The notes beneath the pieces are model-generated. The model did not search any database and was not told the DNA's origin. It saw only the letters and a program-made list of their open reading frames with translations. Made by a program: the position numbers and the translations under genes. 64,000 nt of DNA, from positions 94,080 through 158,079 of the forward strand of contig RHPI01001292.1 in the NCBI GenBank assembly GCA_009103225.1, read 5' to 3'. Every line of letters begins with the position of its first letter. Position 1 is the stretch's first letter. Positions 1 through 59,354 of this stretch are shown here, one piece after another. The stretch comes from Chlorokybus atmophyticus. Lineage: Eukaryota; Plantae; Mesostigma and Chlorokybus algae.

Positions 1-61
1 AGGCGCTTCATCCTGGGGTACTCGGCGAAAGCAACACCGCTCACCAAGTTGTTGAGCAAGG
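1..61 (+). mobile_element. Chromovirus (Ty3/Gypsy) pol fragment, end of RT; continues at 16700 after the inserted element
   Basis: Frame 1 reads RRFILGYSAKATPLTKLLSK, typical of the Ty3 RT C-terminus. Removing 62-16695 and one AAGG copy gives agc aag gag gtc aag tgg (SKEVKW), in frame. Confidence 0.85.
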
Positions 62-310
62 TGTCGGGTCGAGGAAAGTCGAGGGTCACGTTGTCTCGTG
101 CAGCTGGAAGGAAAGACATGCTTGCTGGACATGCAACTGCGGCATGCTTTAGCATGTCTGGTGGTGGTAGCAAAAGCAAAAAGATAACCCAGCTCTTGTA
201 ACAGTAGCTGCTTCTTGGAGCACGTCTGCCGATGTGGAGTGGTGCGGACATGTGGAGGGAATCTCCTCCTTGGTGTATATGCTGATGTAGGACACACACT
301 CAACAAGCCA
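62..310 (-). repeat. Element 1 repeat A, outer copy (3' terminus of the element)
   Basis: tgtcgggtcgaggaaagtcgagggtcac...caacaagcca is repeated at 903-1155 (roughly 80-85% identical by eye). Confidence 0.92.
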
Positions 311-900
311 CTGCTATGGGTAGTGCTGTTTACAGAGTTTTTTGATTGAGTGGAAAATGTGTTACACTGTTACGTGAGGTGAATGAGCAAGCAACACGTG
401 AATGCTATGCTCTGACTGATGCCAACAAGCACACCGCAACCAAGCGCATCAAGCTCATAGCAATGAAAAGCACAGTGCACACGAGCATGCACAGACTCTG
501 ACGCGATGAGGGGATTCTTGATAATCAGGACGGCGTGGTCGTAGTTCAAGTCGCTTCACAAGCTCCTAGCTTTCTCACTCATAGTGTCACCAGCTGATTC
601 CATAAACACTGCGACTACTTATACGAGTCAAGTTTTGACTGTTTAAAACACAAGCTAACGGTCATATCGGGGCTGTTCCCACAAGAATTCTCCCTTGATA
701 TGGAACATAACATATAGATGAATTCACAACCAAACAGCTACGCGCGGTGCTTGTGTAGGCCACGATCATAAGCTAGCATAAGGTCATCATCTAGCTACTG
801 GTCAGTGACGCGCGCGGGTCGATATGCTGATAGTTCGGGCGAGTGTCTTGATGTAAGCATGCCTGATGCAGGCTGACACACGAGGACAATAGGCATGGCA
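301..900 (-). repeat. Element 1 repeat B, 3' copy
   Basis: Colinear with 16102-16695 (caacaagcca...gtagtgctgttt...ggcatg(g/a)ca), roughly 85% identical by eye. Confidence 0.92.
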
Positions 901-902
901 GC

Positions 903-1155
903 TGTCGGGTCGAGGAAAGTCGAGGGTCACACATTGTGTCATGCAGCTGGCAGGAAAGACATACTTGCTGAACATTCTACTGCGGCATGCTGTAGCATGT
1001 CTGGTGGTGTTATAAAAAGCCAAAAGATAACTCAGCCTTTGCAACAGTAGGTGCTGCTTTGAGCACGTCCGCTGATGTGGAGTGGTGCGGACACGTGGAG
1101 GAAATCTCTCCCTTTGTACACATGCTGTGCTGTAAGACACACAGTTAACAAGCCA
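903..1155 (-). repeat. Element 1 repeat A, inner copy
   Basis: Direct repeat of 62-310, separated from repeat B by the dinucleotide GC (901-902). Confidence 0.92.
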
Positions 1156-2566
1156 CCCCCCTTGAGCCTCTGGGGAGGTTCCAGCTCCAGAGCTCAGTGT
1201 TCAACGAGTGTGGAGGGCCGTTGGCGCGGCAGTCATCACACCAGTATTCCTCCATGGGTACCGCATCCAGTGGGGGCTCAAAATAGTAGCAATGCAGGCC
1301 CTTGTTGCAGCCATCACAAAGCATCATAAGCGAGTCATCGTCGGCTCTGCCGCAGCGCTCGCAACGTGTGCGGCGGAGCGAGGGTGCTTGATACGCCAAG
1401 ACCCTGCTACGTAAGGGAGGTGACATGGCGCGTAGTTCACCATGTTGTTCTTCAACCTCTTTCTGGTGTACTGGAAATCCCCGGCCAGGCTGGCCGGGGA
1501 GGTCTAGTACTCTTGTGGGTACACATTGAGCACTTGTAGACTGTGCGGACAATAGAGGTGTTAAGCGTGCTTTTAGGGACCTCCATGCGGTAGGCGAAGT
1601 CTCCTGTTTAAAACCGGCGTTGGCGCTCCTTGTAGAAGCCATTGCGCACGCGCTCGTAGCATAGCGTGTCGCGTGCTGCGCAATGCGCAAGTTGTTGAAG
1701 GCCGTAGGGACTGTGCGCTCAAATAGTGCTGCGCGCGTGTTAATGTCATGGTGCATCCAGTCGGGGTCGTCGAGGTTGTTCACCACGCGATCCACCTCCT
1801 GATGTGCACGGAAAGGAAGTAGTAGCAGCGGTCGCCTGAACAGTACGTAGTACGGGCTGTACTCGCGCAGAGCTGCCTGCTTTGACAGTCGATTTCCAAG
1901 AGCCACCCATGGGAGGTGGTCATCCCAAGTATTCTTCTCGTACTCCAGCACATACTTGCGGAGTGCCTATTTAATGGTCTGCACCGTGCGCTCGGCGAAA
2001 CCGTCGGTTTGGGGGTGGTCACGCGAGGTACGGCAATGATCGGTGTAGCACCCATCTAAGAGAGTATCGAACTCCCCTTTGGACTCAGTGCCTTGGTCGG
2101 TGATGACCTCTGCGCAGCTACCAAACCGGCTGAGGACATGTGAGAGGGAGGCTTGAGCCACCCGTCTATAGCTCTTGTTGGGTAGTGGCACCAGCTCCAC
2201 CCACTTGAAGAAATGCTCGATCATCTTTATGATATAGCGGTTGCCGCATGCCGAGGGTGCTAAGTCTCCCAGTATGTCGAGTCCCCATCGATAGAAGAGA
2301 CCTGAGATGGGAAGAGGATGTAATGTGGCGCTGCGCGTGTTGAGGCTGGCGCGCACCATGTCACATTGTTGACAGTGACTTATAAACTCCTGCACCTGCT
2401 TGTACAACCCATGCCACCAGTACTGTGCCCTTACAAGGCTGACGGTGCGCTCGACACCGAAGTGTCGAAGCTCAGTGTGGAGGGCAGTGATGATGCCTTC
2501 ACGTGTGGCCGGTGTTGGCACCTCCTTATCTTCACCATAGAGGAGACGATACAGCTTGTCATCCAC
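1145..2566 (-). pseudogene. Element 1 DDE integrase with C-terminal PHD finger
   Basis: Zinc-binding region H..LRHFG...CQQC; catalytic motifs WGLDILG, ITDQGTE, GFAERTV; PHD CERCGRADDDSLMMLCDGCNKGLHCYYFEPPLDAVPMEEYWCDDC. Stop at 1967-1969 and frameshifts. Confidence 0.9.
1156..1163 (-). promoter_or_regulatory. Putative polypurine tract of element 1
   Basis: Minus strand reads AAGGGGGG directly before TGGCTTGTT, the start of inner A. The tract is short, and the element 3 equivalent (AGGGTGTG) is degenerate. Confidence 0.5.
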
Positions 2567-3099
2567 CCCAGCGGTAGCTGAGTGCGTTGGTTGATGCGGT
2601 CCTTCTCATGCGCACGCATACCAAAGGAAAGAGAAGGATGGCTTGTCCAGCTATATGTCATGCCTGGTGTTGGTGGGTGCCAGCTCTGTGTCATTGGCTG
2701 CTGCATCATGCATGCAGGCTGCAATTGGCTGGTAGCTTCCTTAGGTTTTTATTTCTCGAAGATTGCAGACCAGTAGATTACAACCGATTGCAGATCAGGA
2801 GACCCCTTTAACCTCGATGTCACCACCGCGAGTGGTCCTTGCGCGTGTAGTGGTTGCGGAGCCGGTTGGCTCAAGGGCAGGCATCTCTTTAGTTGTTGCA
2901 GAGGCACCGGCGTCGGTCTTGCGCCCTAAGCGCGATGCGGTGACAGCAAACATGGCAGCCATTGTCGCAGCTGATGATGCAGGGCCGAGCTCATGCCGAG
3001 CTCCAGTTGCATTGTTGGTGCTCAGGTGTGGGTTACGACTGAGTCCATCGGCGTCTTGGTTGGTGAGGCCAGCGCAATGGTTGATCTCAAAGTCATAGT

Positions 3100-4350
3100 T
3101 CTGCAGTAGTAGGGCCCAACGGGCAAGTTTTCTATCAAATGTGGGCCGCTCATCACCTACTTGAGTGGCTGATCATCAGTAATCAACTAAAAGTGTCGGC
3201 CGAAGAGGAAGGGCCGGAAGAAGAAAATAGCCCACACTGCAGCGAGGCACTCTCTTTCGTAGCTGCTGTAGTTGGCCTCCGCACTGTTGTTGCTCCAACT
3301 ACCGTATGACACCACCCGCTTCTTCTTGTTCTTATCGTGATGCACCAGCACGGCTCCCATCCCGAGCTTGCTTCAGTCGGTGAGAAGGATGAAGGACGTA
3401 GTGTAGTCAGGGCGTTGAAGGATGGGTGCTGTAGTGAGCCTGCCTTTCAGCTTCTTGAAGGCCTGCTGCTGCGGCTCCATCCACACGAACTCCACTTTCT
3501 TCGTCAGTAGCTCATTGAGGGGCCGCGCTATCTTTGCGAAGTCCTTCGCGAAGTCCTTCCCGAATCGACGATAGTAGTTGATTAGGCCCAAGAAGGCGCG
3601 CAGGCGCCTGACGTCCGTTGAAGCAGGGATAGCTGCAAGGGCCTCCACTTTTGCCTGCTGTACGTACACCGTGGGGCACAATCATGTGCCCCATGTAGGG
3701 TACCTTGTGAGCGAAGAAGATGCACTTGTTGGGGTGCACAGTCATCCCCACTCCCTTGAGCCTCTCCAGCACCTCCTTGACGTGCTGTAGGTGCTCTTCG
3801 TTGTTGCAGCTGAAGATAAGATTGTCGTCGATGTAGCGCCGCGCGAAGTCCAGCCCTTTCGAGGCTTTGCCCATGACGCGCTGGAACTCGGGGGCACTCT
3901 TCAGCCCGAACGGCATCACTTCTTATGGTGTAACTCTCGGTTGCCTAAAAAGGTCTTGTTCTTGTCCTCATCCTTGATGGCGATTTGGTTGTATCCTTGG
4001 CACATGTTGAGGATGCTGAAGACTGTGCAGTCTCCTACATTGTGAAACATGCCCTATGCTGTGGGCATTGGGTATCCATCTTGTTTGGTCTTGTTGTTGA
4101 GGGGGCGGTAGTCGCCGCACATGCGCCGTTCGGTCCAGTTGCTTGCTCAATCCTTCTTCAATGACATGACCGCCGCGCCTGCAAAGTACGATGTCGATCC
4201 CTCAGTGAGGCCTGCGTCCAGCAGTGCCTTACATCTGTATTCCACCAGATCCTCCTTTGACTTGGAGAGCCCATATTGCCGTCGGAACACCGCCTCCGTG
4301 TCCGCCAGCTCGATGTTCATTGGGTACACTTTCCCAGCTCTTTTACGTTA
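3100..4350 (-). pseudogene. Element 1 reverse transcriptase and RNase H (Ty3/Gypsy type)
   Basis: RMCGDYRPLN, MPFGLKSAP, RYIDD (3825-3836), LRAFLGLINYYRRF, TAPILQRPDYTTSFILLTD; disrupted by stops and frameshifts. Confidence 0.92.
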
Positions 4351-4661
4351 AAGCTGAATTGGTCTCCTCCACCTGTTGAGGAGACCTCCAGCTTCTCTTG
4401 CGTGTACTCCGTGGCAAAAGCACCGGTGGCGTGGTCCCATGACGTTGCGTTGGCAACCACTGGGATGTCTTCCATTGTTACTGCTGCTTGCTAGCAGCAG
4501 TAACAATGGTCCGCCATGTGAGCCACCTCGAGGGCTGTATGAGCTGCCTTGATGTCTGCAACGCAATCAGCCCACCCCCCAACCAGGTGTGCGAGGTCCA
4601 AAAAGAACACTTTGCGGTCCTGCAGCGCAAAGCTCAGCTCCTGCAACCAGACCATGCTGTT

Positions 4662-5620
4662 TTAGTCCATGGCGCGGCCGAGCAGCCAACTTTGCTGACT
4701 GTCGGTTAGTGGGGACCCCGTGATACTGTTGGGGGAAAACCTTATGGCGCGTTCACGCTCGCGTGCATTGGGTTCGTCCAGCTTGCTTGTCGTGGTGTTG
4801 AACACCGTATGCATGCCATCGCCTCCATTGCAGAAAGCATAGGACCCTGGGTAGGACACCAATGTGGGAAGTGCGCGGCGCGGTTGCCCAGGTTGGTTGC
4901 ACTAATGGAAGTGGCTGTGGTCAAGACGTGTGACAGGTTGAGCTTTACGGTCGGGGATGAGGATGTCGTCGACCAGAAGGTTGCGTGGCATGTACTGCGC
5001 GTGTACTCGGCTGTCATCAGCTCTTTTGTGGTGGCCAAGTTTGTCCACTTGGCGCGGACGCGATGTGCACGGGAACCATAGCGCGCTGCGTTCACCTTGA
5101 GTGGATGCTCAAGAACGGAGCATACCTGTTAATAGGTGGAGACTACATGGGGACGCTTGTCGTCCTCAAAGTGCACGTTCTCAATGACGCACCCTAGTGG
5201 ATTGAAGATCTGGTGCTGTTGGAGGAGGTGGCTGATTCTCATCAGCTCCCAAAACAGATCTGAGTGAGTATCGTCAAGGCCGCGGCATGTTCCTGCCCTT
5301 GAGTGTCCTTAACACTCCCATCTAGCTTAAGAAGTCGATGTTGCCGAGGGACAGCAAGAGGTCCTCTGTGATCAATCGGATGTCTTGTGGCAATGCCTTG
5401 AGGCTGCCTTGCAGTGTCAACGAGGGCAATTGCTGTAGATAACGCTCGTGCAGCTGACACAGATGATGCTTAAGGAGTGCTTAAGCGCGTGGGTCAGGGT
5501 CGCAATAATAGTATTTAGTGACTTTCACACCTGTATAAAGGACCGCGGCGAGACCACTGCCGATGTCTCCGAACAATTTCACTACCATGATGCCCTGCTG
5601 CCGCCGAAAGGTATTGAATT
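4662..5620 (-). pseudogene. Element 1 C5 cytosine DNA methyltransferase domain (DNMT3-like motifs)
   Basis: Motif I KLFGDIGSG (~5550-5580), motif II YYCDPD, motif IV WEC*GHSRAG (Cys 5312-5314, stop 5309-5311), motif VI IENV (5174-5182), motif VIII AHRVR, motif IX EPNARERERA, motif X LLGRAMD (4665-4686). Confidence 0.9.
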
Positions 5621-6118
5621 CCGCGACTGCAGTGGCTACCATTTGCTGGCGTTGCACCTTGCAGTGTCCCTTGTAGTTGTGGAAGCGCGAAGTGATCAGT
5701 GGCTGGGTCAGCAAAAGGTACGCGTCCACCTGTGCACGCCAACGGCGTTCGGCAGGGTTTTATAATGCCACCTCAACCGTGGCATCCTCATGCTCCTCGA
5801 TGTTAAGAATGGGAGCGGAGCCGTCTGCGCGGCAAGGGGCTGCGGCGATGGCAGCGACTCTTGTGCGGGCGCTGTCATATGTGGCTGATGCAGCTCCCGT
5901 ATGCGCACGTAACTGCATCTTGCTGTGTGGCAGCCACTTTGCATTGGGCACGCATGCGTGACACCAACACGAGAGGTAGAAAGCCCTGTACCTCTCCATC
6001 ATCTTCATCCCCATGCGGGCGGAACCACGCCCGCTCTGTCCAGCAGTTAAGGCCCATGCCCACGGGGAAGTTGAAGTCCTGTCCAAGCAAAGAAGCTAGC
6101 GGTGGTGACCACGCATTG

Positions 6119-6400
6119 CTAAACGAACTCGGTGTGGGTTGGGTCCAGCCCTGTTAGCCGAATGCAGAAGGCCTCCTTGGTGACCGCCATCACCGCGACA
6201 CGGCTCCCCGTTGCTGTGTCCAATGCGTATGGGCAGGGCATCAGGTCTAAGCTGGTGATGCCAAGGGACCGCGCGAAAAAGCGCTCAATGATGACTGGCT
6301 GTGCTTCGGTGTCCAAAATCACCCGCTTGGGTGCCATGCCTTTAATGGTCACATGCTTGCCTTGGTTGGCTACTGTGGCAGCGTTGGCGTTGATGCGTAG
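6119..6400 (-). pseudogene. Element 1 aspartic protease
   Basis: KRVILDTEAQPVII is a decayed LDTGA motif; followed by ARSLGI and ALDTATGSRV; homologous region in element 3. Confidence 0.75.
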
Positions 6401-7890
6401 CCTCTTGGTGCGGGCTATCGTCACCGGTGCCTCACGTCTCTCAGCTGAAGGTGCTGAGCGCATCATAGCCAGAGCTCCTCTGCCTACTGGATCTTGACGA
6501 CCCCCTTCTTGTCCTCTCCCTCTGCCAAATCAACCTTGTCGTGGTGGTTGGTCGACATGGAGAGGCCTTTGCGCTAGGGTTTCTGGTGCTGGCTGTGGTG
6601 GATGCCGCCTTGAAGAGGATGGGATCATGCCTGCCGCCGTCCCCAATGGTTGTGGAGGAAAGCCCGACTGACCCGGTTTTTGCGGGCCTGCCTCGCGTTC
6701 TGCTTGCTTTGCGGCGTAGGTCCATCAAACAGCATGAGCTGCGTCTTTAACCAATGTCCCTTCCCACATGGATGTGGGCTCTATGTTCACATTGGTCTAA
6801 TGGTGATAGGGCTGCTGGTATACCCCGCGCTGTTGAGATGGACGATGACAAGCATATACATGCACAAGTGCATGCTACAACACCAGCGTTGGGAGTCCAT
6901 ACAAGACCATCTATTGCCATCATGTCCACGGGTTTAATACCCGCCAGCTACACATGCTCTACTGTAGAAGCTACTGCATCTAGCACACTCAACCATAACT
7001 TGCGCTTTAAGTTGCTCCACATAGCTAGCTTTAAAAGCTTTTCAACAAGCTATGGCACACGCTTAATAGTTAAGTAACCACCGAGATACAATTATTCTAC
7101 TGCAGCGCCTGGAAGTCTCCAAACTCCGGACTCGCCGACGCGCCTAGAACCATCTCGCGCCTATACCTCTCATCTTGAGTCGTCTGGAACCTTCTAGCGG
7201 GTATTCCTATATAGAGTGCAAATTGATCGGCTGACTTAGATGTGGGAATACCCTCAACACGCGCAGTAACTGCTGCCGCATGGCGTGAGTGATGGTGGGG
7301 ACTCGCAAGATCCCTGCTATGTAGGCATCCCACCTGCCTTGTACCACGCCCACATTGAGCACGGTTGTGGCGCGCACCCACATGTGCATTGGAGGTCAGT
7401 CTGCTATGCGTGTAGCTCGTGAGCGATGGCGCTGTGCCGGCGTTGCCGTGCTGCTGCTACTCCCGGCAACCGCAGCATTGCCTCCTGCACTCCATTCACA
7501 GTGTCAAGCGCAGTGGTGGCAGCTTCAGCGTATGCTTGCCGCAGCGAGCGGATGAATGCCCCCAACCATGATGCTCTGTTGCCAAAGGTGAACATGGGGA
7601 CAGCGGGGTGATTGGCGACGACTCACATCACGAGTCGTGCTCGAGAGGCGCTGCCTTCTTGCATCCCCATCATCTGTCTTAATGCACTGTCCTCAGGCCG
7701 GTGCAGCATGACTGCTTGCCGTATAAGAGCGGTGCGGAGTTGTTGCTCTCCTACCATACCAGCTTTTCCTCGCTGGGTGGTGTCTCCTTGTGGAGTGAGG
7801 TAACCTCGCCCTGCATCCCGCTGGTCGTCGGGCATACCATCGACCAAGGGGGGCAGTAGCAGGGCGATTACCCCCCTCACTTGTGGTTCC

Positions 7891-8397
7891 TGTTAGCATG
7901 AGCATGTCTTGCACACTGCTTAGTCCAGTCGGCTTGTACATTGGCTAAGGCATGAGCCTGAGAGACACTGCTACTAGTAAGAGCTGATATCGATCAGTCA
8001 TGAGTCTGTAGCAGATATCGAGTCCACTACGCGGAGTATGACCAAGCAGGAGACTCCGGACTTGCTCATGAGGCTGGCGCAGCCTGACGCAGCCAACGCC
8101 TTGGGAGAACGGCGAGAACTCCGCGTATACTTAGCCTTAGGAGGCGTGGCTTAGCTTGTTGAAAAGCTTTGGCTGTAAGCTAGACAACCAAGCTTACATA
8201 TTGGCAATCCGCTGAGTATAGCTCACGCGTTGCTTGCTAAAGTAGACATGTGTAGTCTGGCTGGTATAAAGGCCAACAGAATTAACAAGTTGTTGGTTTG
8301 GGTGAAACCCCTTTGCAAGCCTTGTATGCACGCCTTTTGTGTATGTTCTAATACATGTGTATGCTGTAGTTGGCCAGCGCTAGCTCAGTGTTCAACA
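7891..8397 (+). repeat. Copia 5' LTR
   Basis: Direct repeat of 12427-12933, about 98% identical. Confidence 0.97.
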
Positions 8398-8410
8398 GGT
8401 TATGGGCCCA
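8398..8410 (+). promoter_or_regulatory. Copia primer-binding site, half-tRNA-iMet type
   Basis: GGTTATGGGCCCA directly after the LTR; this is the PBS type of Drosophila copia, Ty5 and Osser. Confidence 0.85.
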
Positions 8411-8508
8411 CACTGCTAGTGGTTCAAGAGAGGAGACAGCACTACAACTAGTGGAAAAGCTGAGCGGAACTGCTACTTGCGGAAGACCTCTGAAGAAGGC
8501 GTGACAAG

Positions 8509-11500
8509 ATGGCAGAAGATGAAGGCTCCAGTGTCAGGTTGTCGGTGGCACCTCCGGACCTGGAGAACTATAGCACATGGAGCATAAAGATGAAGACGCT
8601 CCTAAAGCACAAGGGTTTGTGGAAGTATGCCGATCCCAACGGTGACGCACCTGTAGAGGGTACGCAGAGGTTGTGGTTGGGGAAGAGTGAAAAGGCACTT
8701 GCATTGCTATGCTTGAACGTGAAGGATTACCATCTTGTAATGCTTGATGAGTGTGAGCATGCCTAGGAAGCGTGGCAAAAGCTGGCAGACACATTCAAAG
8801 CAAGCAACAATGCAAGGAAGCTGCAGCTGAGAAGGCAGCTGAACGCGCTGAAGAAGGAGTCAGCGGAGCGTATCTCTAAGTACGCGGGACGAGCAAGGGA
8901 GCTGTGGAAAGACCTCACTTCGATAGGCCACGAGGTGAAGGAGGTGGATCTGGTTTGGGCTATCCTCTCCGGTCTCCCTGAGGAGTACGACATGGTGGTG
9001 ACCGTGCTTGAGACGCAAAGGGAAGAACTCAAGCTCAATGTGGTGCTGCCCATGCTGCTTCAACAAGAAGAGAAGACAGGCAGGAGAAGGGATGAAGCAA
9101 ATTCGGTGGCGTTTGCTGCTTCAAGCTCAAAGAAAGGAAGTCAGGGTGGAGGAGGAGGCTCGTACAATGGTGGCAACAGGAAGGGGAAGGACCACAAGAA
9201 GACCCTCAAGTGTCATCATTGTGGGAAGAAGGGCCACTTCAAGATGGAGTGCCGGCTGTGGTTAGTGGAGCAAGAGAAGGCGAAGGGTGGCGGACACGAC
9301 AACAAGGGTGAGAAACCCATTGCGTTTACATCTGCATCGTCAAGATCTGCAACTGCTTGGGTGCTGGACTTCGGGTGCAACAAGCATCTCACTTTTGACA
9401 AGGAGCAGTTCCAGAGCTACAGGCTTATTGACAAGCCTGTCATGGTCACATTTGGGAGCAGTGAGGAAGCAGCCATTAGCATGGGGGACGTCCACCTCAA
9501 CTGCAGTGTTGACGGAGCGGAGAGGCAAGTGTGCTTGCGCAATGTGTTACATGTTCCCCGAGCAGTTGTTAGTCTAGTCTCAGTGCGTGCTGCTGCAAGA
9601 GCTGGGGCTACGACTGTATTTAAGGGAGACCATGGGCGTGTATTCTTTGATGGGGTCGTGTACATGATTGCCAAAGATTATGGAGGAGGAGAGTATCATG
9701 TGAAGCTTGCTATAGTGCAAGCGTATACTGCATCGACCAAAGAGTCTGCAGCGCAGGTGGCATCGACGATTTGGACATCTCGGCTACGATAACCTCACCA
9801 GGCTGGTGAAGGAAGACATGGTGGTTGGCATCAACATCAAGCCGGAGGAGTTCAAAACCATGCAAGAGGTGTTGTGTGAACCCTGTGTGCTAGCGAAGCA
9901 ACGAAGACTGCCATTCCCAGCATCACAGAGTGTGACAACCAAGCCTCTGCAACTGGTACACTCTGATGTATGCGGACCACTGCCTGTTGCAACTGCTGAA
10001 GGGTACAGGTAATCTTGTACATTCTTGGATGACTATAGCAAGGTTGCGGTGGTGGTGCCCCTGCATTTAAAGTCGGAAGTGTCGGCACAGCTCAAGAAGG
10101 TACTCAACCTACTGAAGAAACAGTCAGAAGAGAAGGTGGTGACAGTGCGATCAGATAGAGGTGGAGAATACATCAGCAAGGAGCTAAAGACCTGGTTGAC
10201 CGAGCACGGGATCACGCACCAATACACGGCACCCTACACCCCGCAGCAGAACGGAGCAGCTGAGAGGCTGAACAGAACCCTGTTGGAGAAAGTTAAAGCA
10301 ATGCTGGTGGACGCAAAAATGCAAGACCATAGGTGGGGAGATGCACTGCTTACTGCAGCGTATGTGCGCAATCGCTCACCGGAAGCATCTCAAGCAAAGA
10401 CACTGTGGGAGCTTTTCACCAAGCAAAGGCCAGACATCTCTATATTGAGGGTTTTCGGCTCTACAGCGTATGTTCTTATCCCCAAGCAACTGCAAAAGAA
10501 GCTGGCGCCCAAGAGACAAAAAGGGCGTGTTTGTTGGCTATGAGTACAACTCAAAGGCCTACCGCGTGCTGCTGGAAGACAACAAGGTGGTGGTGAGTAG
10601 GCATGTGATGTTTATGGAGGAAGGCATCACAGGTGCTGTCCCAGAGGTTGTTGTTGTTAAGGAGGAGGAGGACCCCCACATGGAGGAGTCACCATTCAAC
10701 AACATTCCGCACCCAAAGGACCCAACTACAGATACCAACCATCAGTCTCAGCAACAAGCATTGGAGGAAGAAGCTGTGGAGGTCCAGGAGGAGCCCATGT
10801 ACATGCTGAGGAGCGCAAGACCTGAGGAAGGACGCTGCAAAAGCTTGGCAGCATTAACCAAGGAGGAGGAGCCTACCACATATGAGGAGGCAATGATAGC
10901 CTTAGACACAGAGCTATGGCAGCATGCGATGGACGAGGAGATAGCATCCTTGCACGCCAACGGCGCATGGAGGCTGGAGAAGGTCCCACCTGAAGTGAAG
11001 CCCTTACCAGTGAAGTGGGTGTACAAGATCAAGCACGATGGGCAAGGCCGCATCGAGAGACACAAGGTACAATTGGTGGTGAAGGGGTACTTGCAGCAAG
11101 AGGGCATTGACTTCGATGAGGTGTTCGCCCCTGCTAGTAAGCTTGTAACCTTTCGCACCATGTTTGCACTTGTGGTAGCTGAAGATTGGGAGCTACACCA
11201 CTTGGATGTGAAGACTGCATTCCTCTACGGAGAGTTGGAGGAGGAGATCTACATGCAGCAACCCAAGGGCTATGAGGAGGGAGGACCAGGCACTGCTTGC
11301 AGACTTGTAAAGGCATTGTACGGGCTCAAGCAAGCGCCAAGAGTATGGCACATCCGGCTCACCAAGAAGTTGGAGAAAATTGGCTTCACACCTTCTGAAG
11401 CTGATCCTGGACTCTTCACGCACAAGGAGAAGAAAATCTGGCTGTTGGTCTACGTCGATGACATCATGGCTGCTGCGAAGAAGCTGAAGGAGGAGGAGGT

Positions 11501-12410
11501 GAAGACATCTCTCAAGTCTGCCTTCGACATGAGGGACTTGGGAGAGGCAAAGTTGTTTTTTAGCATGGTGATCGAGAGAAACAGGGACACTAAGACAGTC
11601 AAGATTAGCCAGGAGTTGATGGCGCAATGGATTGTGGAGAAGTTTGGAATGGGAGACGTCAAAGGCAAGGTAATACCCATGTCCGTGGGAGCCAAGCTGC
11701 AGCGAGCAATGAGTGAGACAGAGAACCTCGACAGGAGCAAGTTCCCTTACACTGAGTTGGTTTGGAGCATGCTTTACATGTTTGTGAGCACTAGACCAGA
11801 CATCGCACATGCTGTGGGAGTGCTTGCACGATACGTGTCAGCACCCACCATGGAGCATTGGAGAGCTGCAAAGGAGTTGCTGCGTTATGTGATGGGGAGC
11901 ACAAGCGTGGGCATTCACTTTTGAGAGGGAGCTGGTGCTTGAGACAAAGAGTTGGAGGGCTACTGTGACGCTGACTACGCTGGGGACCTCGACACGAGGA
12001 GGTCAACTACTGGCTACGCGTTCCTGATAAATGGTGGAATTGTTAGCTAGATCGGTAGGATGCAACCTACCGTGGCTGCCTCGGCAGCAGAGGCGGAGTA
12101 CATGGCTGCCTCATCGGCAGTAAAGGAGGCATTGTGGTTGAAGAAGCTGAAGGCGGACTTATGCTACCGTGCAAGCTGCATCAGCATCAACTGCAACAAC
12201 CAAGGCGCAATCAAGCTGCTAAAGCATCCGATTGCTTCAGTCCGGTCAAAGCACATTGACGTGATTCACCACTTCGTGCGCGAGCGTGTGGCAAGGAAGG
12301 AGGTGGCGTTCAAGTACTGCAACACGGAGGAGATGCTGGCTGACTGCATGACCAAGCCTTTGGTGACGAAGAAGTTCCATGACTGCACTAGAGGACTTGG
12401 AGTCTACTAA
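8509..12410 (+). pseudogene. Copia gag-pol polyprotein
   Basis: Zinc knuckle CHHCGKKGHFKMEC, protease AWVLDFGCNKH, integrase VRSDRGGEY and QQNGAAERLNRTL, RT LHHLDVKTAFL and LVYVDD, RNase H SKHIDVIHHFVRE; several stops (e.g. 8764, 11922) and frameshifts. Confidence 0.95.
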
Positions 12411-12426
12411 GCTGCCTGCGTGGGAG

Positions 12427-12933
12427 TGTTAGCATGAGCATGTCTTGCACACTGCTTAGTCCAGTCAGCTTGTACATTGGCTAAGGCATGAGCCTTAGAG
12501 ATACTGCTACTAGTAAGAGCTGATATCAATCAGTCATGCGTCTGTAGCAGATATCGAGTCCACTACGCGGAGTATGACCAAGCAGGAGACTCCGGACTTG
12601 CTCATGAGGCTGGCGCAGCCTGACGCAGCCAACGCCTTGGGAGAACGGCGAGAACTCCGCGTATACTTAGCCTTAGGAGGCGTGGCTTAGCTTGTTGAAA
12701 AGCTTTGGCTGTAAGCTAGACAACCAAGCTTACATATTGGCAATCCGCTGAGTATAGCTCACGCGTTGCTTGCTAAAGTAGACATGTGTAGTCTGGCTGG
12801 TATAAAGGCCAACAGAATTAACAAGTTGTTGGTTCGGGTGAAACCCCTTTGCAAGCCTTGTGTGCACGCCTTTTGTGTATGTTCTGATACATGTGTATGT
12901 TGTAGTTGGCCAGCGCTAGCTCAGTGTTCAACA
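12427..12933 (+). repeat. Copia 3' LTR
   Basis: Preceded by a GCGTGGGAG purine-rich tract; matches the 5' LTR. Confidence 0.97.
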
Positions 12934-14116
12934 GTTCCAACGCCCTTGCTTGGTCAGCAACAGTTGCTTGCCCTAGCTGTGTGACTGTGGTTGGTGTTGG
13001 TGGCACCATGGCAAATGCAGTGGAGATGCCGGCGACATCTGACGGCCCCAAAGGTTGCACTGCAGCGGCGCGTGCTTCTTCGCATGCCTGTCGGCGTGCG
13101 TCAACTTGCGCGGCTTGGTCCTGCCGAAAGTGCTGTGCCTATTCAAGAGCAGCGAACCGTTCTTGGTGACTTCCTTGTGTGAGTCTACGGAGTGCCGGGT
13201 CAGCGCTCAGTGGCATGTTTGAGGTGGCCACCCCGAGGCCTTGCACTCAACAATGCTGAAGTCCGAGCGGGTCCAGCGGTGAGGGCTCAAAGTCAATCTG
13301 TTGCGCTGGCATTGGTTGACGTGACCGGCTAAGTGCGTTTGGCAGCCTCGCATGCAGCGCAAGAAAAACCCGAATTGCTAGCTCCAACAGAGCAGGGCGC
13401 CGGTAAGTAACCCTGAAGAGGTGATCTCTCATTTTGGGAGCCGTGCCAGCTAGAATCTCATCTTTCAACTGTTGTAAGTTGCGCTCCGGCGGTGGATGGT
13501 ATTCGAGCAGTGGTATCGGTAGGATGCGATCATCTCGCGCTACATGCGTTGTGCGTTGCCCCCCTGATGCGTACGCGATGGTGGTGCGTTCGATGTTGCG
13601 TAGAACGGACACCCAAGCGCGCTCTGCTAGCAATCCGCGTGGCACTTGTGACATCAGGGTGCGGAGGAGGGGCCGCGCGGACCCCTGATGGTGTGGTGGC
13701 AGTGGCAGCAGCGGCACACAGAGGTGCGGCAACATCAACTGCAGCAAGAGTTGTGGCACCTGCATTATTCGTGGTAACGGAAGTTGCCGCTGTGAGCGTT
13801 GCAGCAGTCGTGACTGATGCAGTGTCCGCAGCTGTAGCGTGTGGTGCCAACACCACCAGTGCGTTTGTCAGCCATGGCTGCAGCAGCCTCAATGCCGGTC
13901 ATCTTTGGCGCCAATGTGGTGCTAGGTGTATCCGCACTGGCGGCACATGTGGGTGTTGTTGTCGATGGTGTCATAGACGGGGTCATCCCAGCAAGGGTTG
14001 TGGCTGCCGAGCCAGCCCCACTTTTGGCTTCTAAAAATGCTGCTATTAACGATGCGCCAGCCTCTCTGCGCGCACGTTTTTATGGTTGGACACGTGATGG
14101 CGGGGGTGTGTTTCTT

Positions 14117-15800
14117 TCACGTTTCGGTGCCATCAAGGCTCATCGGGCAGCGTAGCAGGCTTGGTAGTTTTGCTCCCTGTTTTCTTCCAGCTGAGCCACC
14201 CGTGCCATGAGGGCCGCGACTTGGTCGACAGCTGGCTGATGCTTTGACATCAGGAGCTCCAACGCGAGGGCGTCCCTCGGGTCCCTTGCGTTGTGGAGGG
14301 CGGTTTTTCCCTCTGTAGTCATTCTCCTCTTTTGAGTGCCGGCGTTGTTGTTGTTGGGGTTGTGGCCACCAGTGTTGTTGTAGCCAACAGCGTTGCTGTT
14401 GTTGTAGCCCCCGCTGTTGTTGTTGCGATAGCCACCAGCGCTGTTGCTGTTGTTGTAGCCAATAGAGGGCCGCAGCTCGCAGAATTTGAGTCAATATACT
14501 GCTTTTAGGAGGCCCGTCTTATGGCAATAGTCGCACAAGGTTGCCATTATCTTCGGTGCACTCCTTTTGGTAGTGCCCATGTCAACCACACCAATGGCAC
14601 AGTACTAGTGACAAGGGCAGCATAAGCTGACCAATTGTTGGTGCGCGTGACTGGAGCATCTTGACTACAGTTTCGTCGAGGGGGCTTAGCACTCGCGCTT
14701 GCTATGGGACGTGAGGCGCTTCGGTTGGTGTCCAACACTGCCTTCTCTCATACACCGCAGGCTTGTGAATGGCTTGTGCAGTCTCAAAAGCTTCCTTGAG
14801 GGTGTAGCCGAGGGGTCTGCTTTAGTTTAGTGTCAAGCGCGTCGACTCACTCAAGATGGGGTCGAACTCAGCCACGTACACCACTGCAGCTGCCTCCTCA
14901 CTGACGACCTTGTAACAGGTGTCCTTCAGTAGTCCTTCCAACCGCAAATACAGCCGAAGACAGTCCTCGTTGGGCTTGCGTCGAAAGCGTCTCAACTCCT
15001 CCACCTTGCTGGTTGTCTAGCGCAGGAAGGTACGCCGCAGTGCCGCGTACAAGTCTTTGAGAGGAGAGCCCGACGTGATAGCACCAACGGTGATGGCTGG
15101 TGCGCGCAACGCCAACGAGTAAAGTGTAAAAAGGCTGCCTCCTTTTAGAGTATACGAACTCAGTGTTTGTGGTACTGGTGTCCCTGTTTTCAAAGCTGCA
15201 ACTTGTTGTTCAGCTTGCTCAGCCTCAAGGATGGCAGCGGTGCGGTTAAACACTCTGGTCTGTCGGTTGGCCTTCTTGACCTCGACCTCTGCAGGTGTTA
15301 GCGAGGCAACAACCAGCTCGACTTCTTCGTCATCTGCCTGTTGCATAGCTGCGGCTAACGCCCCCCAGTGACTGAGGTTGGAGGGACCATTGCTGCTGAG
15401 GCAGCAGCTGCTGGGCTATACGTCGGTGCAGGTGCTACAGTGCTAGCAAGCTCGCCATAGCCATCAACTCGATGCAGCTCAGCAACGGACTTCCACAAAT
15501 CGTGTGCCTCATAATTAAGGTACTGAGCCATGATATGGAATGACACCTCATCTGACCAGTCCTTGTTCTTGGGGGCTTGCTGTCGCATCTTGAAGTGGAC
15601 CTTGATGATGAACTCGTCGAGTGGTGTGGTGCCCGCACGTCCGGGGAAGCGCAGGGAGTTGGTTGAGCTGAAAGGCGCCATTTCATCATTGTCATTGTCC
15701 AAAGGAGGTGGAGAAGCTTAATGGCGAGGAGTGAAGTGGGAGGAGGTGAAGCCTGAGACGGGACGAGCGCCTCTGCTGCTACGGTAACTGCTTCCTTCAT
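14117..15800 (-). pseudogene. Element 1 gag
   Basis: EELRRFRRKPNEDCLRLYLRLEGLL segment, decayed CDYCHKTGLLKAVY knuckle and Asn/Gly-rich repeats; homologous to element 3 ORF 53839-54975. Confidence 0.8.
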
Positions 15801-16086
15801 TTGCTCATTCGTAGGTGAGGTTGGAGGCCGGGCTCCAGTTGCTGAGGTCCTCTTCGTCTATTGGCGAGAATGGGGTGGGCCTGCTTATACAGCTGATGCG
15901 ATAGTGAAAGGGTATAAAGGGTAGAGTGTTTGTGCTCTACGAAGTTATCTCCATGCTGCTACCACTCAACGCACGAGTGCTTCTGCGCACTATGCGATGA
16001 CAGTGATAATGATGCACGAGGATGTATCCAACTGCAAGCTGCACTTCTGATCTGCAGGATGCCACCATACTCAATGTAGCAAAAAG

Positions 16087-16101
16087 GGTGACACTGTGAG
16101 T
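16087..16101 (-). promoter_or_regulatory. Putative self-priming primer-binding site of element 1
   Basis: Minus-strand ACTCACAGTGTCACC directly follows repeat B and is complementary (14/15, the mismatch being G-U) to 16371-16385 inside B. Confidence 0.75.
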
Positions 16102-16695
16102 CAACAAGCCACTATCATGGGTAGTGCTGTTTACACAGTTCTTTGCATGAGTGGAAAATGTGTTACACTGTTAAGTAAGGTAAATGAGCAAGCAACACGT
16201 GAATGCTATGCTCTAACTGATGCCACACTGCAACTAAGCGCACCAAGCTCACAGCAATGACAAGCATAGTGCACACGAGCATGCACAGACTCTCACGCGG
16301 GGAGGGGATTCTTGGTAACCGGGGCGGCATGTTCGTAGTTCAAGTCGCTTCACAAGCTCCTAGCTTTCTCACTCACAGTGCCACCATCCAATCCGGTGAA
16401 CATTGCGACTACTTATACAAGTCAAATCAAGATCGTTCAGAACACAAGCTAACGGTCATATTGGGGCTATTCCCACAAGAAGTCTCCCTCGATATAGAAC
16501 ATAACATATAAGCTGAATTCACAACTGAATAGCTACGCGCAGTACCTGTGTAGGCTACCGTTACGAGCTAGTCTAAGGTCATGGTCTAGCTATTGGTCGA
16601 TGACGCGCGCGGGCCGGTATGCTGTTAGCCCGAGCGGGGGTCTTGATGTAAGCATACCCGATGCAGGCTGGCACACGAGGACAATGGGCATGACA
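16102..16695 (-). repeat. Element 1 repeat B, 5' copy (promoter-bearing)
   Basis: Homologous to 301-900. Minus-strand TATAAG at 16412-16417 lies about 30 nt upstream of the inferred start site at 16385. Confidence 0.9.
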
Positions 16696-19600
16696 AAGGA
16701 GGTCAAGTGGAGTTTGGGGGAGACACAACAAAGAGCCTTTGATGGCATTACGAATGCATCAATGATGCACTGGTGTTGCAAATGCCGGACTTCTCTCAAC
16801 CATTCGAGGTGGTAAGTGATGCTAGCTTGCACGGCACCGGAGCGGTGTTGTTGCAAGATGGACATCCCATAGCCTTCGAGTCACACAAGTTTAGTAACGC
16901 CAAGCGCAACTACACCACCACCGAGCAAGAGTTGCTTGAAGTAACAAACGCCTTGTGGAAATGGCGTCGTTACTTAAAGGAGGTGAAGTTCAGGGTTGTA
17001 ACCAACCACAATCCCCTCATCTACCTTCCCCAACAACCAAGCTTGTCCTGTAGGCAAGCACGGTGGGCCGAGTTCCTAACACGCTTTGACTTTAAATGGG
17101 AGTATAGGCCGGGGAGGATCACTGTTGCGGACCCTCTAAGTAGAGTGCCCGCCAAGCTGCCAAACCTTGGGAACAAAGCTATGACCATTGCGGTGGCGAC
17201 AAGGTCACAAGCACAAGTAATGCCGAGACTTGAATGGGTTAAAGGGAGCAAGTTAGAGCCAACTAGCTTGGAAGCGAGGATAGCAAGTGCTTACCTCATA
17301 AACCGATGGTTCAAGACTTAGACAACTTCGAACTAGTGCAAGAAGGCAACTATTGGTACAAGGGTGAGGCGGTACTGGTGCCGGATGATCGGGGCCTTCG
17401 AGTGGCGTGCATGAGCGAGATGCATGACCCTCGCTACCAAGGGCACTTCGGCATCAAAGAGACCATCAAGCTTGCGCAAAGAAGCTATTGGTGGCCTTAA
17501 ATGACAAGTGACACCAAGGCATATGTGAAGACGTGTGACTCGTGTCAATGCAACAAGTCCACCAATGCATGCAAGAGTGGCTTGCTTGTACCTCTACCCG
17601 TGCCCGATAACACGTGGGAGAGTGTGAGCATGAAGTTGATAATGAAGCTACAAAAGACAAAGCATGGCAACACGGCCATTGTTGTCTTCGTGGATGAGTT
17701 GAGCAAAATGGCTCGCTTCGCCGCATGTAATATGTAGATCAATGCGGTTGAGTTTGCTAGGTTGTTTATGACAAACGTGTTCAAGCTTCATGGACCTTCG
17801 AAGGAGTTGGTCTTAAATAGAAATCCGAAATTCACAGGAGCATTTCGGAAGAGTGTGCATGAGACATTAGGGAATAAGCAATCCATGTCCACCGCATACC
17901 ATCCTCAAAGTAACGGACAAATAGCGAGGATGGACAGAAACTTGGAACAAGCCTTGCGACACTACGTGTCGGCAAGCCAAGACAATTGGGATGAGCTACC
18001 AAATGTAGTGGAGTTTGGCATGAACTCGGCCTACCAAGAATTGGTGAAGGAGAGTCCCTTCTTCTTGAACTATGGCAAACATCCCTGTGCGCCTAGTGAA
18101 AAGGCTTTCGGCAAGAAGGCAAGGGCACCGACCGCGGGAGAGCTTTCCGCACTCAGGGCCACAATAAGTACTTTGCCGACAAGGATCGCCGGGTTGGTGT
18201 TGAGCAACAAGTGTTGCTTAGCACGAAAAACATTACGGTCAAGAGTCGGGGAAGCAAGAAGTTTCTACCCAAGTGGATTGGCCCTTTCGAGGTGCTTGAT
18301 CCCATTGGCGCCGTGGCGTATATGCTTCGCCTCCTGGAGCACTTTAAGATACATGACGTGTTTCATGTATTGTTGCTAAGAGAGTACAAGAGTGATGGTA
18401 GAGTCCGACCCCACCTCTATCCGAGTTGGTGGATGGTGGGTGGGAGTATGAGGTAGAGGCGATATTGGCACGCCATCCTCGTGGTAACAACCGTTCTTTC
18501 GAGTATCTCGTACAATGCAAGGGCTATGGTGCAGAACACAACTCATAGGTCTTAGAGAAGGACTGGGCAAATTTCCAAGAGTTGATGGAGAAATTCCTTG
18601 CAATTAATGGAGATTTAACCCAAGCCTAGCTACCCTCTATGTAGTTATAAGGCCCTTTAGAATGTGCACAAGACGTGTGCAACCCCAAGCCAAACCTATT
18701 AAGTAAGAGTGCACTCGCGAGAGGCACTCATGAAGGTTGGCCACCTTCGTGTCTCGTAGTTTCTCATACATAGTATGTGTCGGCGACCGTTACAAAGTAG
18801 GTGGGGAGGAGTGTAACGCGGCTAGTAGTTATGCTCGAAGTGCTTGGACATATGTGAGATAGACAACCAACAAGCATGTATGCTTGCTGCTACAAGGTAG
18901 ACATTAATGTGGAGCAGTTAGCCACCTATGTCCATATGGTAGATGTTGACATCTTATACGTGGTGTTTATCAGACGGACATTAATGTGGGCTGGTTAGCC
19001 ACAAATGTTTAATATGTAGACGTGTCTATATTGTAGATAAAAACATCTCAGAAGAAAAGCATAGTTAATATCTAATACATGAGTGCAAAAATCTTACAGT
19101 TATTATCTTACAGTTATCATAGCTTCGATCTTGATACCAAAAGCACTTATGTCTGGAGAATACCAGAAGAGACAAGCATGGACATCACACACAAAGGCGT
19201 GGATATCTTAGCAACGAATGTCCACATTGTAGAAGACACTGTGGATATTACACGTGCACTTATCCGGAAGGTGCCAGAAGAGGCAGATGCGTATATCGCA
19301 CGGAAGTACGCTGGTATTGTAGACTGAAATACCGATATTTCAGAGATTGGTATACATAAACTGTGGCCACGACTGTATCCAATGGCCAATACCATGAGAT
19401 AATAGTATAATCTCATGGGTTGCTCATATACTTGGGGTAAGATATCCTTTAAGATGATTGATGTGAGCCTAGTAAGGGCAAGTGCAAGAGTGCTTGTCAC
19501 AAGATGGTTGGCCGTCTTAGATTGCATTATGGTCCGAACGAGGCACCATTGGTGGAAACACCCACTACCCTTAAGTGACTAGATAAGGCAGTAGGCAAGG

Positions 19601-28837: not shown

Positions 28838-28841
<4 letters not shown>

Positions 28842-28917
<76 letters not shown>

Positions 28918-43702: not shown

Positions 43703-44773
43703 TGTCGGATCGAGGAGAGTCAAGGGTCACACTGTCTCGGGCCGCTGCAGGGAAAGACATGCTTGCTAGCCCTGTCGCTGCAACATGTTGTAACCTGTAG
43801 CAAAAGTAAAAGATAACCCAGCTCGGTCACCAACGGTTGGCGAGGAGTGCTTGATGGAGCTGTTCCGCTGTCGCTAAATCACACGGACATGTGAAGGCGG
43901 TGTCCTCCTTAGTGTACATGCTGTGCTGTAGGTCACACAATCAACAAGCCACTACTATAGGTAGTGCTGTTTGCACAGTTTTTTGCATGCGCGGAAAATG
44001 TGTTACACTGTTAAGTGAGGTGAATAAGCAAGCAACTGGTGGATACTATGCCCTGACTAATGCCAACAAACACACTGCAACCAGGCATACCAAGCTCACA
44101 GCGATGACAAGCACGATGCACACACGAGCATGCACAGGCTCTCACATAGTGAGGGGGTTCTTGATAACCGGGATGGCGTGTTCGCAGTTCAAGTCGTTGC
44201 ACAAGCTTCTTTGATTTCTCACTCACAGTGTCACCAGCTGATCCGGTGAACAATGTGACTACTTAGACAAGGCAAATCATGATTGTTCAGAACATAAGCT
44301 AACGGTCATGTCGGGGCTATTACCACAGCAATTGTCACTCGATATATAGCACAACTTATAGCTGAACTCACATTTGAACAGCTACGCGCGGTGCCTGTAG
44401 GCTATGGTCGTGAGCTACTCTGGAGTCATGACCTAGCTATTGGTTAGTGACGCGCGCGCGCTGGTATGCTGGTAGGCCGGGCGATGGTTTTGATGTAGAC
44501 ATGCCCGATAAAGGCTGGTATGCGTGGGCACTAGGCATAACAGCTGTCTGGTCGAGGGTCACATCGTCTCGGGCCGCTGCAGGGAAAGACATGCTTCCTA
44601 GCCCTATCGCTGCAACATGTTGTAACCTGTAGCAAAAGTAAAAGATAACCCAGCTCGGATGGCGAGGAGTGCTTGATGGGGCTGTTCCGCTGTCGCTAAA
44701 TCACACGGACATGTGGAGGCGGTGTCCTCCTTAGTGTACATGCTGTGCTGTAGGTCACACAGTCAACAAGCCA
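43703..44773 (-). repeat. Element 3 A-B-A terminal repeat block
   Basis: The two A copies are similar to each other; B is homologous to 301-900 and 16102-16695; junction CA-GC-TG at 44541-44546. Confidence 0.9.
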
Positions 44774-44799
44774 CACACCCTGAGCTTCTGACGAGGTTC

Positions 44800-46040
44800 C
44801 AGCTCCAGAGCTCGGTTGTTAACGCCGGTGAGGAGGACCGTTGGTGCGGCAATCGTCGCACCAGTACTCCTCCATGGGTATTGTGTCAAATGGGGGCTCC
44901 AGAGTAGCAATGCAGGCCCTTGTTGCAGTTATCGCAGAGCATCGTGAGTGCGTCGTCGCCGGCGCTGCCGCAGCATTCACAACGTGTGCTGCGGCCGGGG
45001 CGAGGGTGCTGGATGCGCGCAAAGCCCGCTATGTAAGGAAGGTAACATGTCGCGCAGTTCACCATGTTGTCTTTCAACCTCTCCCCGTTTTGACCGAGGA
45101 GGTCCAGCACTCCTGTGGGCTACACCTTGAGTACCTTGTAGACGGTGCGGCCCACGGAAGTGTCAAGCGTGTCCTTGGTAGCTGCCATGCTGTAGGCGAA
45201 GTCCCCTGCTTGAAACCGATGTTGGCGCTCCTTGTAGAAGCCGCTTCGCACGCGCTCGTAGCACAGGGTGTCGTGGTGCTGTGCGATGCGCAGGTTGTTG
45301 AAGGCCATCGGGACGGTGTGCTCGAACAGCGTGGTGCGTGTGGTAATGTCGTGGTGCATCCAATCGGGATCGTCGAGGTTGTTCACCACACGGTCTACTT
45401 CCTGCTGTGCACGAACGGGAAGCAATGGCGGACGCCCGAACAGCAGGTAGTATGGGCTGTACTCGCGCAGAGCCGCCTGCTTTGACAATCGGCATTCACT
45501 GAACTTGATAAAAGCCACCCACGGAAGGTGGTTGTCCCAGGTGTTCTTCTCATACTCCAGCACGTACTTGCGGAGTGCCTTCTTGACAGTCTGTACTGTC
45601 CGCTCGGCGAGACCGTCGGCTTGGGGGTGGTCACGCGAAGTGCGGCGATGATTGATGTAACGTCTGTTCAGCAGGGTGTCGAACTCCCCTCTGAACTCAG
45701 TGCCCTGGTCGATGATGACCTCAGCGCAGCTGCCGAACCGGCTGAGGACATGGGAGAGGAAGGCTTGAGACACCCCCCTGCTGCTCTTGTTGGGTGATGG
45801 CACCAGCTCCACCCATATGGAGAAGTGCTCAATCGTGATCAGGATGTAACGGTTGCCACGTTCGGAGGGTGCCAAGTCTCCCAAGATGTCGCGTCCCCAG
45901 CGATAGAAAAGACCGGAGATGGGGAGAGGGTGCAAGGTAGCGCTGCGTGTGTTGAGGCTGGCGCGTACCATGTCACATTGTTGGCAGCGACTGACAAACC
46001 CCTGCACCTGGTTGGACAGCCCATACCACCAATATTGCAC
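44800..46040 (-). pseudogene. Element 3 integrase plus PHD finger
   Basis: RWGRDILG, IIDQGTEF, GLAERTV; CECCGSAGDDALTMLCDNCNKGLHC...EEYWCDDC (frameshifted). Confidence 0.9.
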
Positions 46041-47960: not shown

Positions 47961-48185
47961 GGGACCAAGAGGTAGCGTTGGCGACTACTGGGATGTCCTC
48001 CACAGTGACTGCTGCCCACTCCTCCATATAGGCGATTTCCAGCGCGGTGTGTGCCGCTTTGATCTTTTGCCCTCGATCGGCCCACCCCCCCGCCAGGTGT
48101 TCGAGCTCCTGGAAGGACACATGGCGGTCCTGGAGAGCAAAGCATATTTCTAATAACCATACCATGCTGTTCTGGTCCATGGCGC

Positions 48186-59318: not shown

Positions 59319-59354
<36 letters not shown>

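Follow-up and report, generated by a model that had tools for sequence, protein, structure and literature searches.

The stretch of DNA analysed here (the window: 64,000 nt of Chlorokybus atmophyticus, contig RHPI01001292.1, positions 94,080 to 158,079 of the forward strand) carries on its minus strand a retrotransposon, copy 1, in which the split direct repeats of DIRS-like elements occur together with Gypsy domains, and further along a second copy of the same family (Table 1). Read on its own strand, copy 1 runs from a terminal repeat B1 through gag-pol and a G-rich tract to A1, the dinucleotide GC (902-901), B2 and A2, an order of repeats that had been described in an earlier note on this DNA and that BLASTN within the window confirmed: A2 (62-310) aligns with A1 at 85% identity over 253 nt (E 4e-78), and B2 (301-900) with B1 (16102-16695) at 84.9% over 601 nt (E 0). 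The same A and B repeats were recovered independently by other self-comparisons of the window. Two complete, co-linear long terminal repeats (LTRs) of the classical kind are not found; the 5' end is B only and the 3' end is A-GC-B-A, an arrangement matching the A1-internal-B1-A2-B2 layout of DIRS elements. While the repeats themselves are as previously reported, the boundary between B2 and A2 is not, since the stretch shared at 301-310 is the first 10 nt of A (TGGCTTGTTG), which also come after B1. In the window family only, about 25 nt following B1 duplicate the start of A, with a 4-nt insertion.

The ends of copy 1, given earlier as TGTC...GACA with an AAGG duplication, stand on minus-strand reading: the 5' terminus is TGTCATGCC at 16695, the 3' terminus is CCCGACA at 62, and CCTT (AAGG on the plus strand) lies on both flanks. 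Internally, A1 terminates with GACA at 903 and is followed by GC and then by B2, from TGCCATGCC at 900, and the tract AAGGGGGG adjoins the first base of A1. When positions 1-61 are spliced to 16700 onward and a single copy of the duplication is kept, the Gypsy reverse transcriptase (RT)/RNase H connector of the host sequence becomes continuous (...PLTKLLSK/EVKWSLGETQQRAF...), as had been claimed; with the host frame uninterrupted after excision, copy 1 is therefore a clean, simple insertion into another Gypsy element. The span 62-16695 is thus correct in its outer ends as one element, although its length of 16.6 kb includes a nested 5-kb Copia. Because its repeat pairs are 15% diverged, copy 1 is evidently old. 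In the alignment of the B repeats a TATAAG is conserved about 270 nt into B, and a TGTAA some 60 nt short of its end is fully conserved, so B1 alone could both start and terminate transcription.

Table 1. Features of the window that belong to, interrupt or resemble copy 1 (plus-strand coordinates)
Feature	Position	Strand	Evidence
Target-site duplication, 5' side (AAGG on plus)	16696..16699		Flank reading; host frame restored on excision
B1, 5' terminal repeat, begins TGTCATGCC; conserved TATAAG and TGTAA	16112..16695	-	84.9% to B2; alignment
Repeat (~25 nt) of the A start after B1 (TGGCTTGTTGACT...GTGTCACC), at the place expected for a primer-binding site	16085..16111	-	Sequence and alignments
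Degenerate 5' untranslated and gag regions of copy 1	12934..15857	-	72% to copy 2, 53853-54896
Nested Ty1/copia, interrupting copy 1 and not part of it	7891..12933	+	508-nt LTRs, 98%; 5-bp duplication GTTCC
Protease region, weak aspartyl protease match	6122..6529	-	Asp_protease_2, E 0.0036; P0278 protease at same relative place
Frameshifted C5 cytosine DNA methyltransferase domain of copy 1	4644..5603	-	tblastn with P0278 residues 971-1286
Ty3/gypsy-type RT and RNase H, fragmented	3029..4314	-	RVT_1 2.3e-15, RT_RNaseH_2; tblastn
Integrase, HHCC zinc domain and DDE core	1673..2605	-	Integrase_H2C2 9.7e-16, rve; invariant H,H,C,C,D,D,E in alignment
PHD finger at integrase C-terminus; reading frame stops at 1148	1229..1363	-	PF00628, E 7.7e-7, 29.5 bits against cutoff of 24
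G-rich polypurine tract AAGGGGGG adjoining A1	1156..1163	-	Sequence; G run before A in L003, L004, L005, L006, L009, L010
A1, internal A copy, TGGCTTG start, CCCGACA end	903..1155	-	85% to A2; alignment
A/GC/B joint, GACA-GC-TGCC, a decayed form of the clade palindrome GACAGCTGTC; proposed integrase cleavage site	897..906		Same joint in relatives
B2, internal B copy	311..900	-	BLASTN; alignment
A2, 3' terminal A copy, GACA end	62..310	-	BLASTN; alignment
Target-site duplication, 3' side (AAGG on plus)	58..61		Flank reading
Copy 2, same family	43703..54930	-	Self-comparison, Pfam, tblastn

Minus-strand stop-to-stop pieces of the window were scanned against Pfam and yielded a gag zinc knuckle, a weak aspartyl protease, a C5 methyltransferase, RVT_1, RT_RNaseH/RT_RNaseH_2, Integrase_H2C2, rve and, at the extreme C-terminus, a PHD finger. 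The succession RVT_1, RT_RNaseH(_2), Integrase_H2C2, rve gives the protease (PR)-RT-RNase H (RH)-integrase (IN) order of Ty3/gypsy elements with a Ty3-type RT and RH, and alignment of the integrase with six relatives found H17, H22, C52, C55, D84, D144 and E179 invariant, with D-35-E spacing. The closest intact relative, the metagenome protein P0278, has CCHC, PR, methyltransferase (DNMT), RT, RH and IN within one open reading frame (ORF), and its top matches in PDB are Ty3 Gag-Pol (7q5b, 5e-92) and Ty3 RT (4ol8, 5e-72). The methyltransferase, which lies within the Gypsy pol polyprotein, is nearly complete and in a single frame in copy 2, where it matches PF00145 (DNA_methylase) with E 2.9e-9 and the DNMT of P0278 over 313 aa by tblastn. 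From these domain matches the element is assigned, as a decayed copy, to a green-lineage clade of the Ty3/gypsy type (Metaviridae-like), with a DDE integrase ending in a PHD finger and a Dnmt-type C5 methyltransferase in pol. The Ty3 affinity and the DDE integrase had been recognized in the earlier note; the Dnmt-like methyltransferase, the C-terminal PHD finger, the nested Copia and copy 2 were absent from it. Two domain orders occur in the clade, PR-DNMT-RT-RH-IN (the window element and P0278) and RT-RH-DNMT-IN-PHD (most relatives). In either position the DNMT is accompanied by some 70-100 residues of upstream sequence, and a protein search with the 483-aa region before the DNMT returned no matches.

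Throughout its length, copy 2 shares 66-80% identity with copy 1. It retains A2 (43703-43951), B2 (~43952-44542), GC and A1 (~44545-44773), followed upstream by coding parts for IN (45123-46139), RH/RT (46375-47984), DNMT (49980-50900) and gag (53842-55062), the last containing a CCHC knuckle detected by Pfam as zf-CCHC. Its 3' end reads internal region, G-rich tract, A, GACA-GC-TGTT, B, A and flank, and its two A copies are 95-97% identical. Neither a 5' B1 nor the B-start motif was found from 54930 to 64000. Between the DNMT and the RT, copy 2 has a 1.8-kb AT-rich stretch (48185-49981) that is unaligned with, and absent from, copy 1 and includes an N gap (48778-49080); this could be an insertion or an assembly problem. 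The window has further N runs at 33987-34312 and 61721-61890.

A full HMMER search with the integrase retrieved thousands of relatives, many of the long ones also having a DNMT and a PHD finger. The best integrase matches, from Klebsormidium nitens, Calypogeia and metagenomes, are at most 53% identical, and the closest relative retrieved from K. nitens, at that 53%, has no nucleotide similarity to the window element. Two loci of Scenedesmus sp. PABB004 (GCA_014905635.1) have the permuted layout of copy 1. In one (L005), B1 occupies 8760-9309 and is followed by A1 (20301-20498), GC, B2 and A2 to 21251, with the duplication CGGC; in the other (L006), B1 (14338-14901) is followed by A1 (26198-26397), GC, B2 and A2 to 27150, with the duplication GGGC. 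In both, A1 is preceded by a G run and repeat identity is 98.9-100%. Together with AAGG in the window, these give TG...CA ends and duplications within the 4-6 bp expected of Ty3/gypsy elements, at three independent insertions, whereas DIRS elements have no target-site duplication; the probability of three 4-bp duplications arising randomly is about (1/256)^3. In a metagenome contig (L004) the order is (A-GC-B)-internal-(A-GC-B)-(start of A), the palindrome GACAGCTGTC stands at position 208 of the 795-nt unit, and the end of B adjoins the start of A. On a K. nitens scaffold (L003) the stop of the IN-PHD frame is followed by a G run, some 125 nt of A, GACAGCTGTC and B, and in the equivalent place after the G run L009 has ATGACAGCTGTCAT and L010 and L011 have GTCAGCTGTC.

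In all relatives examined the A/B joint is the palindrome (G/T)(A/T)CA-GC-TGTC (L001, L003, L004, L005, L006, L009, L010 and L011), CA-GC-TG falls about 120-250 nt after the G-run polypurine tract in L003, L004, L009 and L010/L011, and a G-rich tract adjoins A1 in every family examined. Even between relatives with integrases no more than 40-53% identical, the first 10-15 nt or so of B (TGTCAKGC...) are conserved; the permuted layout and the palindromic A-GC-B joint are therefore features of a clade and not of a single event. The joint between B and A2 behaves differently. L005 and L006 are 99.9% identical over 10.7 kb and have identical A-GC-B joints, and they differ by a cluster of four positions exactly at the B-to-A2 joint, which reads CCCTG/TGTGCAGC in one and CCCTATCC/TGTGCAGC in the other; the B1 ends of both are CCCTGTTC. 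Such a difference would not be expected of templated inheritance, and suggests that the B-to-A joint is remade by end joining in each cycle. Homology shared between the B end and the A start was considered as a general mechanism and rejected, the overlap being 10-25 nt in the window family and 3 nt or none in Scenedesmus and L004.

Other relatives were less informative or showed peculiarities of their own. The top representative match, in Haematococcus, appeared strong only because two integrase copies inflate it; the identity is 42%. In the Haematococcus lacustris loci L001 and L002, both rearranged, the integrase region is duplicated in tandem at 100% identity (L001 24384-29482 and 30409-34505, and the equivalent in L002) and an inverted 1.1-kb B duplicate lies beside the palindrome; these could be rearranged copies or assembly artefacts. 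The two loci were used for the presence of the palindrome only, and L001 has it. The Calypogeia locus (L007) consists of densely nested 99% repeats running in both directions, and the closest relative of the same domain order (L008) is truncated after the integrase, with no repeats seen. L004 has two additional ORFs (661 and 192 aa; 12150-14759), without Pfam match, between the IN-PHD and the polypurine tract, for which there is no space in the window family. The contig ends of L009 (1-298 and 11391-11688, 97.7%) and of L010 (1-139 and 12785-12923, 99.3%) overlap, thereby describing a closed path internal-A-GC-B-internal that fits tandem, circular or collapsed copies.

The anatomy of these elements carries two definitions of an end. 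Since the polypurine tract adjoins the start of A and the internal region comes after the end of B, the LTR that reverse transcription would define is A-GC-B. The integrase, by contrast, used as its ends the beginning of B (TGTC...) and the terminus of A (...GACA), which stand back to back inside that LTR as the palindrome GACA-GC-TGTC, so that the integrated copy is B-internal-A-GC-B-A with a 4-bp duplication. This anatomy corresponds exactly to a two-LTR circle (LTR = A-GC-B) cut open at the A/B joint of the 5'-side LTR, as the earlier note had perceived. The model that we consider best, with a probability of roughly 0.6, is that the cDNA is circularised and that the integrase nicks the inherited palindrome. 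An RNA from B1 to B2, with transcription starting and ending inside B, would be reverse transcribed into a linear AB-internal-AB cDNA, and the joining of its ends would produce a two-LTR circle and, with it, the B-to-A joint. In the LTR that borders the internal region on its 5' side, the integrase would nick the palindrome 3' of each CA, leaving CA-3'OH ends and 2-nt 5' GC overhangs as in ordinary retroviral 3' processing, and would insert the opened circle with a 4-bp stagger; A2 and the A missing upstream of B1 would represent the two halves of the cut LTR. Cleavage of this kind has a biochemical precedent, in that the integrases of prototype foamy virus (PFV) and human immunodeficiency virus 1 (HIV-1) have been reported to cleave the palindromic LTR-LTR junction of two-LTR circles (PMC1180852, PMC1905944).

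Several points weigh against circularisation followed by cleavage of the palindrome. Every step beyond the integrated copy is deduced from anatomy. The proposed circle has two identical palindromes, and cutting at the other would give B-A-B-internal-A, a form seen at none of the four informative ends (copy 1, the 3' end of copy 2, L005 and L006); all four are of the replicable type, an outcome of about 1 in 16 if cutting were unbiased, and the circle model leaves this bias toward one palindrome unexplained. The argument from junction variability comes from one pair of copies, L005 and L006, and the window's own genome has furnished a single full-length copy, the 5' end of copy 2 being missing. 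After B1 there is no convincing tRNA-complementary primer-binding site in any family examined, the window sequence at that place starting TGGCTTGTTGAC, and the repeat of the A start found there in the window family hints at a templated step which the model does not need.

That repeat is in fact among the attractions of the foremost alternative, an unlikely one in our estimation, in which a DDE enzyme serves replication of the DIRS/Ngaro style: the transcript would run from the interior of B1 to the interior of A2, the cDNA ends would be aligned on A1-GC-B2 and sealed as a templated circle, and the integrase would open the circle. The layout equals the A1-internal-B1-A2-B2 of DIRS elements with split direct repeats (PMC8969392, PMC5890265), and the A-start repeat of about 25 nt after B1 could serve templated transfer in the window family, although it is absent in Scenedesmus and L004. 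Under this scheme, moreover, the B2-to-A2 joint would be inherited through RNA and hence stable, yet it is the sole spot at which the 99.9% identical Scenedesmus copies differ, and in every family the polypurine tract directly abuts A1, as suits normal plus-strand priming of an LTR composed of A-GC-B. A reordering of the chemistry ranks next and is likewise improbable: the integrase would cut the palindrome of the 5' LTR in linear AB-internal-AB and integrate the new ends, and host end joining would later seal the A start to the B end. It would leave the same product, duplication and variable B-to-A joint as a circle formed first, from which it is indistinguishable by sequence alone; it requires, however, that the chromosome be held only by the intasome until repair.

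Two further explanations carry very little weight. Gaps of N in the window assembly, and the age of copy 1 with its 15% repeat divergence, might invite the view that an ordinary two-LTR Gypsy element has here undergone a one-off rearrangement, a recombination of tandem LTRs or mis-assembly. This view is already contradicted by the loci compared, for the layout, palindrome and 4-bp duplication recur in copy 2 and in other organisms assembled independently, the layout has been reported for K. nitens, and the host frame is regained exactly on excision. It is equally improbable that the element belongs to the tyrosine-recombinase (DIRS/PAT/Ngaro) class, its recombinase missed or lost and the integrase belonging elsewhere. 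The repeat layout by itself would favour that assignment, but no tyrosine recombinase (Phage_integrase) appeared among the Pfam matches of the window pieces scanned or of the intact relatives P0080, P0278 and the L004 ORFs, the integrase is in frame order with RT-RH in the intact single ORFs of P0080 and P0278, the RT-RH is Ty3-like, and the 4-bp duplication and TG...CA ends are present.

The permuted layout in company with Gypsy domains has a precedent, contrary to the earlier note, which knew of no description. KnitGypsy-Dnmt3, a Gypsy element whose pol includes a Dnmt3, has been reported from K. nitens (de Mendoza et al. 2018, Nat Commun 9:1341, PMC5890265), and the legend to Fig. 4c of that paper describes its repeat structure as that of a DIRS element and its domains as Gypsy. 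Like the window element, KnitGypsy-Dnmt3 combines a Gypsy-type pol, whose polyprotein includes a Dnmt3-like C5 methyltransferase, with a DIRS-type repeat structure; the article discusses no target duplication, palindromic joint, joint conservation or mechanism. A literature search combining split direct repeats, integrase and Gypsy found no description beyond KnitGypsy-Dnmt3, and no other paper using that name was encountered in the literature searched. Scaffold L003 of the same species has, like the window element, a G run, A and GACAGCTGTC-B after the IN-PHD ORF; what was retrieved from K. nitens included no DNMT-bearing copy, its best match to the window element is the 53% identical integrase, and the two may belong to one family or clade by sequence. 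Obligatory integration from an end-joined circle by way of an inherited palindrome is a plausible mechanistic reading that, as far as we found, is new.

Among established systems, PAT, Ngaro, TOC1/TOC3 and SymbioDIRS-Dnmt3 have the A1-internal-B1-A2-B2 layout of the window element, and for DIRS elements with split direct repeats a circular intermediate is assumed and some carry methyltransferases, as the window element does. Those elements employ a tyrosine recombinase and make no target duplication, in contrast to the DD35E integrase, TG...CA ends, 4-bp duplication and Ty3-like RT-RH-IN seen here. Canonical Ty3/gypsy elements, including the PHD-bearing green-algal Gypsy-7a_cRei and REM1 (PMC9940879), share with the window element gag, PR, RT, RH, IN, the polypurine tract, TG...CA ends, a short duplication and the PHD finger. 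They differ in having two complete LTRs and an integrase that acts on linear cDNA ends, whereas in the window element the integrase ends lie inside the LTR and the integrated copy is circularly permuted. Two-LTR circles of PFV and HIV-1 (PMC1180852, PMC1905944, PMC4372172) share with the proposed route a DDE integrase that cuts a CA...TG palindrome in a circle and so regenerates integration-competent ends. The retroviral palindrome, as reported, arises through end joining, and integration by this route is minor or debated; in the window clade the palindrome would be inherited in the LTR, the B-to-A joint would be the end-joined one, and the route would be obligatory. Bacterial insertion sequence (IS) elements of the copy-out-paste-in type (IS3/IS911, IS30, IS256) also have a DDE enzyme acting on a circle in which the element ends are abutted with a 2-3 bp spacer; unlike the window element, they are DNA transposons without reverse transcription and without an LTR. 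The "LTR subparts" of the Chlamydomonas v6 paper were considered as a parallel and dismissed, the term there meaning ordinary LTRs.

In the textbook view, retroviruses and LTR retrotransposons insert a linear cDNA by its ends and a two-LTR circle is a dead end, and split direct repeats are treated as a hallmark of tyrosine recombinases and used as such in classification. The present clade shows that a DDE integrase can coexist with a split-repeat layout, in an anatomy where one joint is palindromic and inherited, the other end-joined and variable, and the target duplication 4 bp long. Extended to its full scope, our proposal would be that a whole green-lineage clade of Ty3/gypsy elements has moved its integrase ends inside the LTR as an inherited CA-GC-TG palindrome and integrates obligatorily from the end-joined two-LTR circle, by a route like circle-junction integration of IS elements and with a layout convergent with DIRS/Ngaro; in this breadth we regard it as an evenly balanced proposition. 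The co-carried Dnmt and PHD finger might act on the circular cDNA or on target choice. The old question of circles as integration precursors becomes directly testable in algae with near-identical, probably active copies. In practice, LTR finders needing two complete LTRs will miss or mis-annotate such elements and DIRS classifiers may mislabel them.

Some neighbouring features of the window deserve brief mention. The host of copy 1, at 1-61 and 16700 to about 18450 on the plus strand, is another Gypsy element with an RNase H, an HHCC-DDE integrase and a GPF-type integrase C-terminus, and is frameshifted at several sites. The Copia nested within copy 1 has TG...CA ends and gag, IN and RVT_2 ORFs that are mostly open, and is evidently younger than copy 1; its RT found no match above 65%. 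A dense array of short-period tandem repeats, with periods of about 8-12 nt, occupies 28782-29197.

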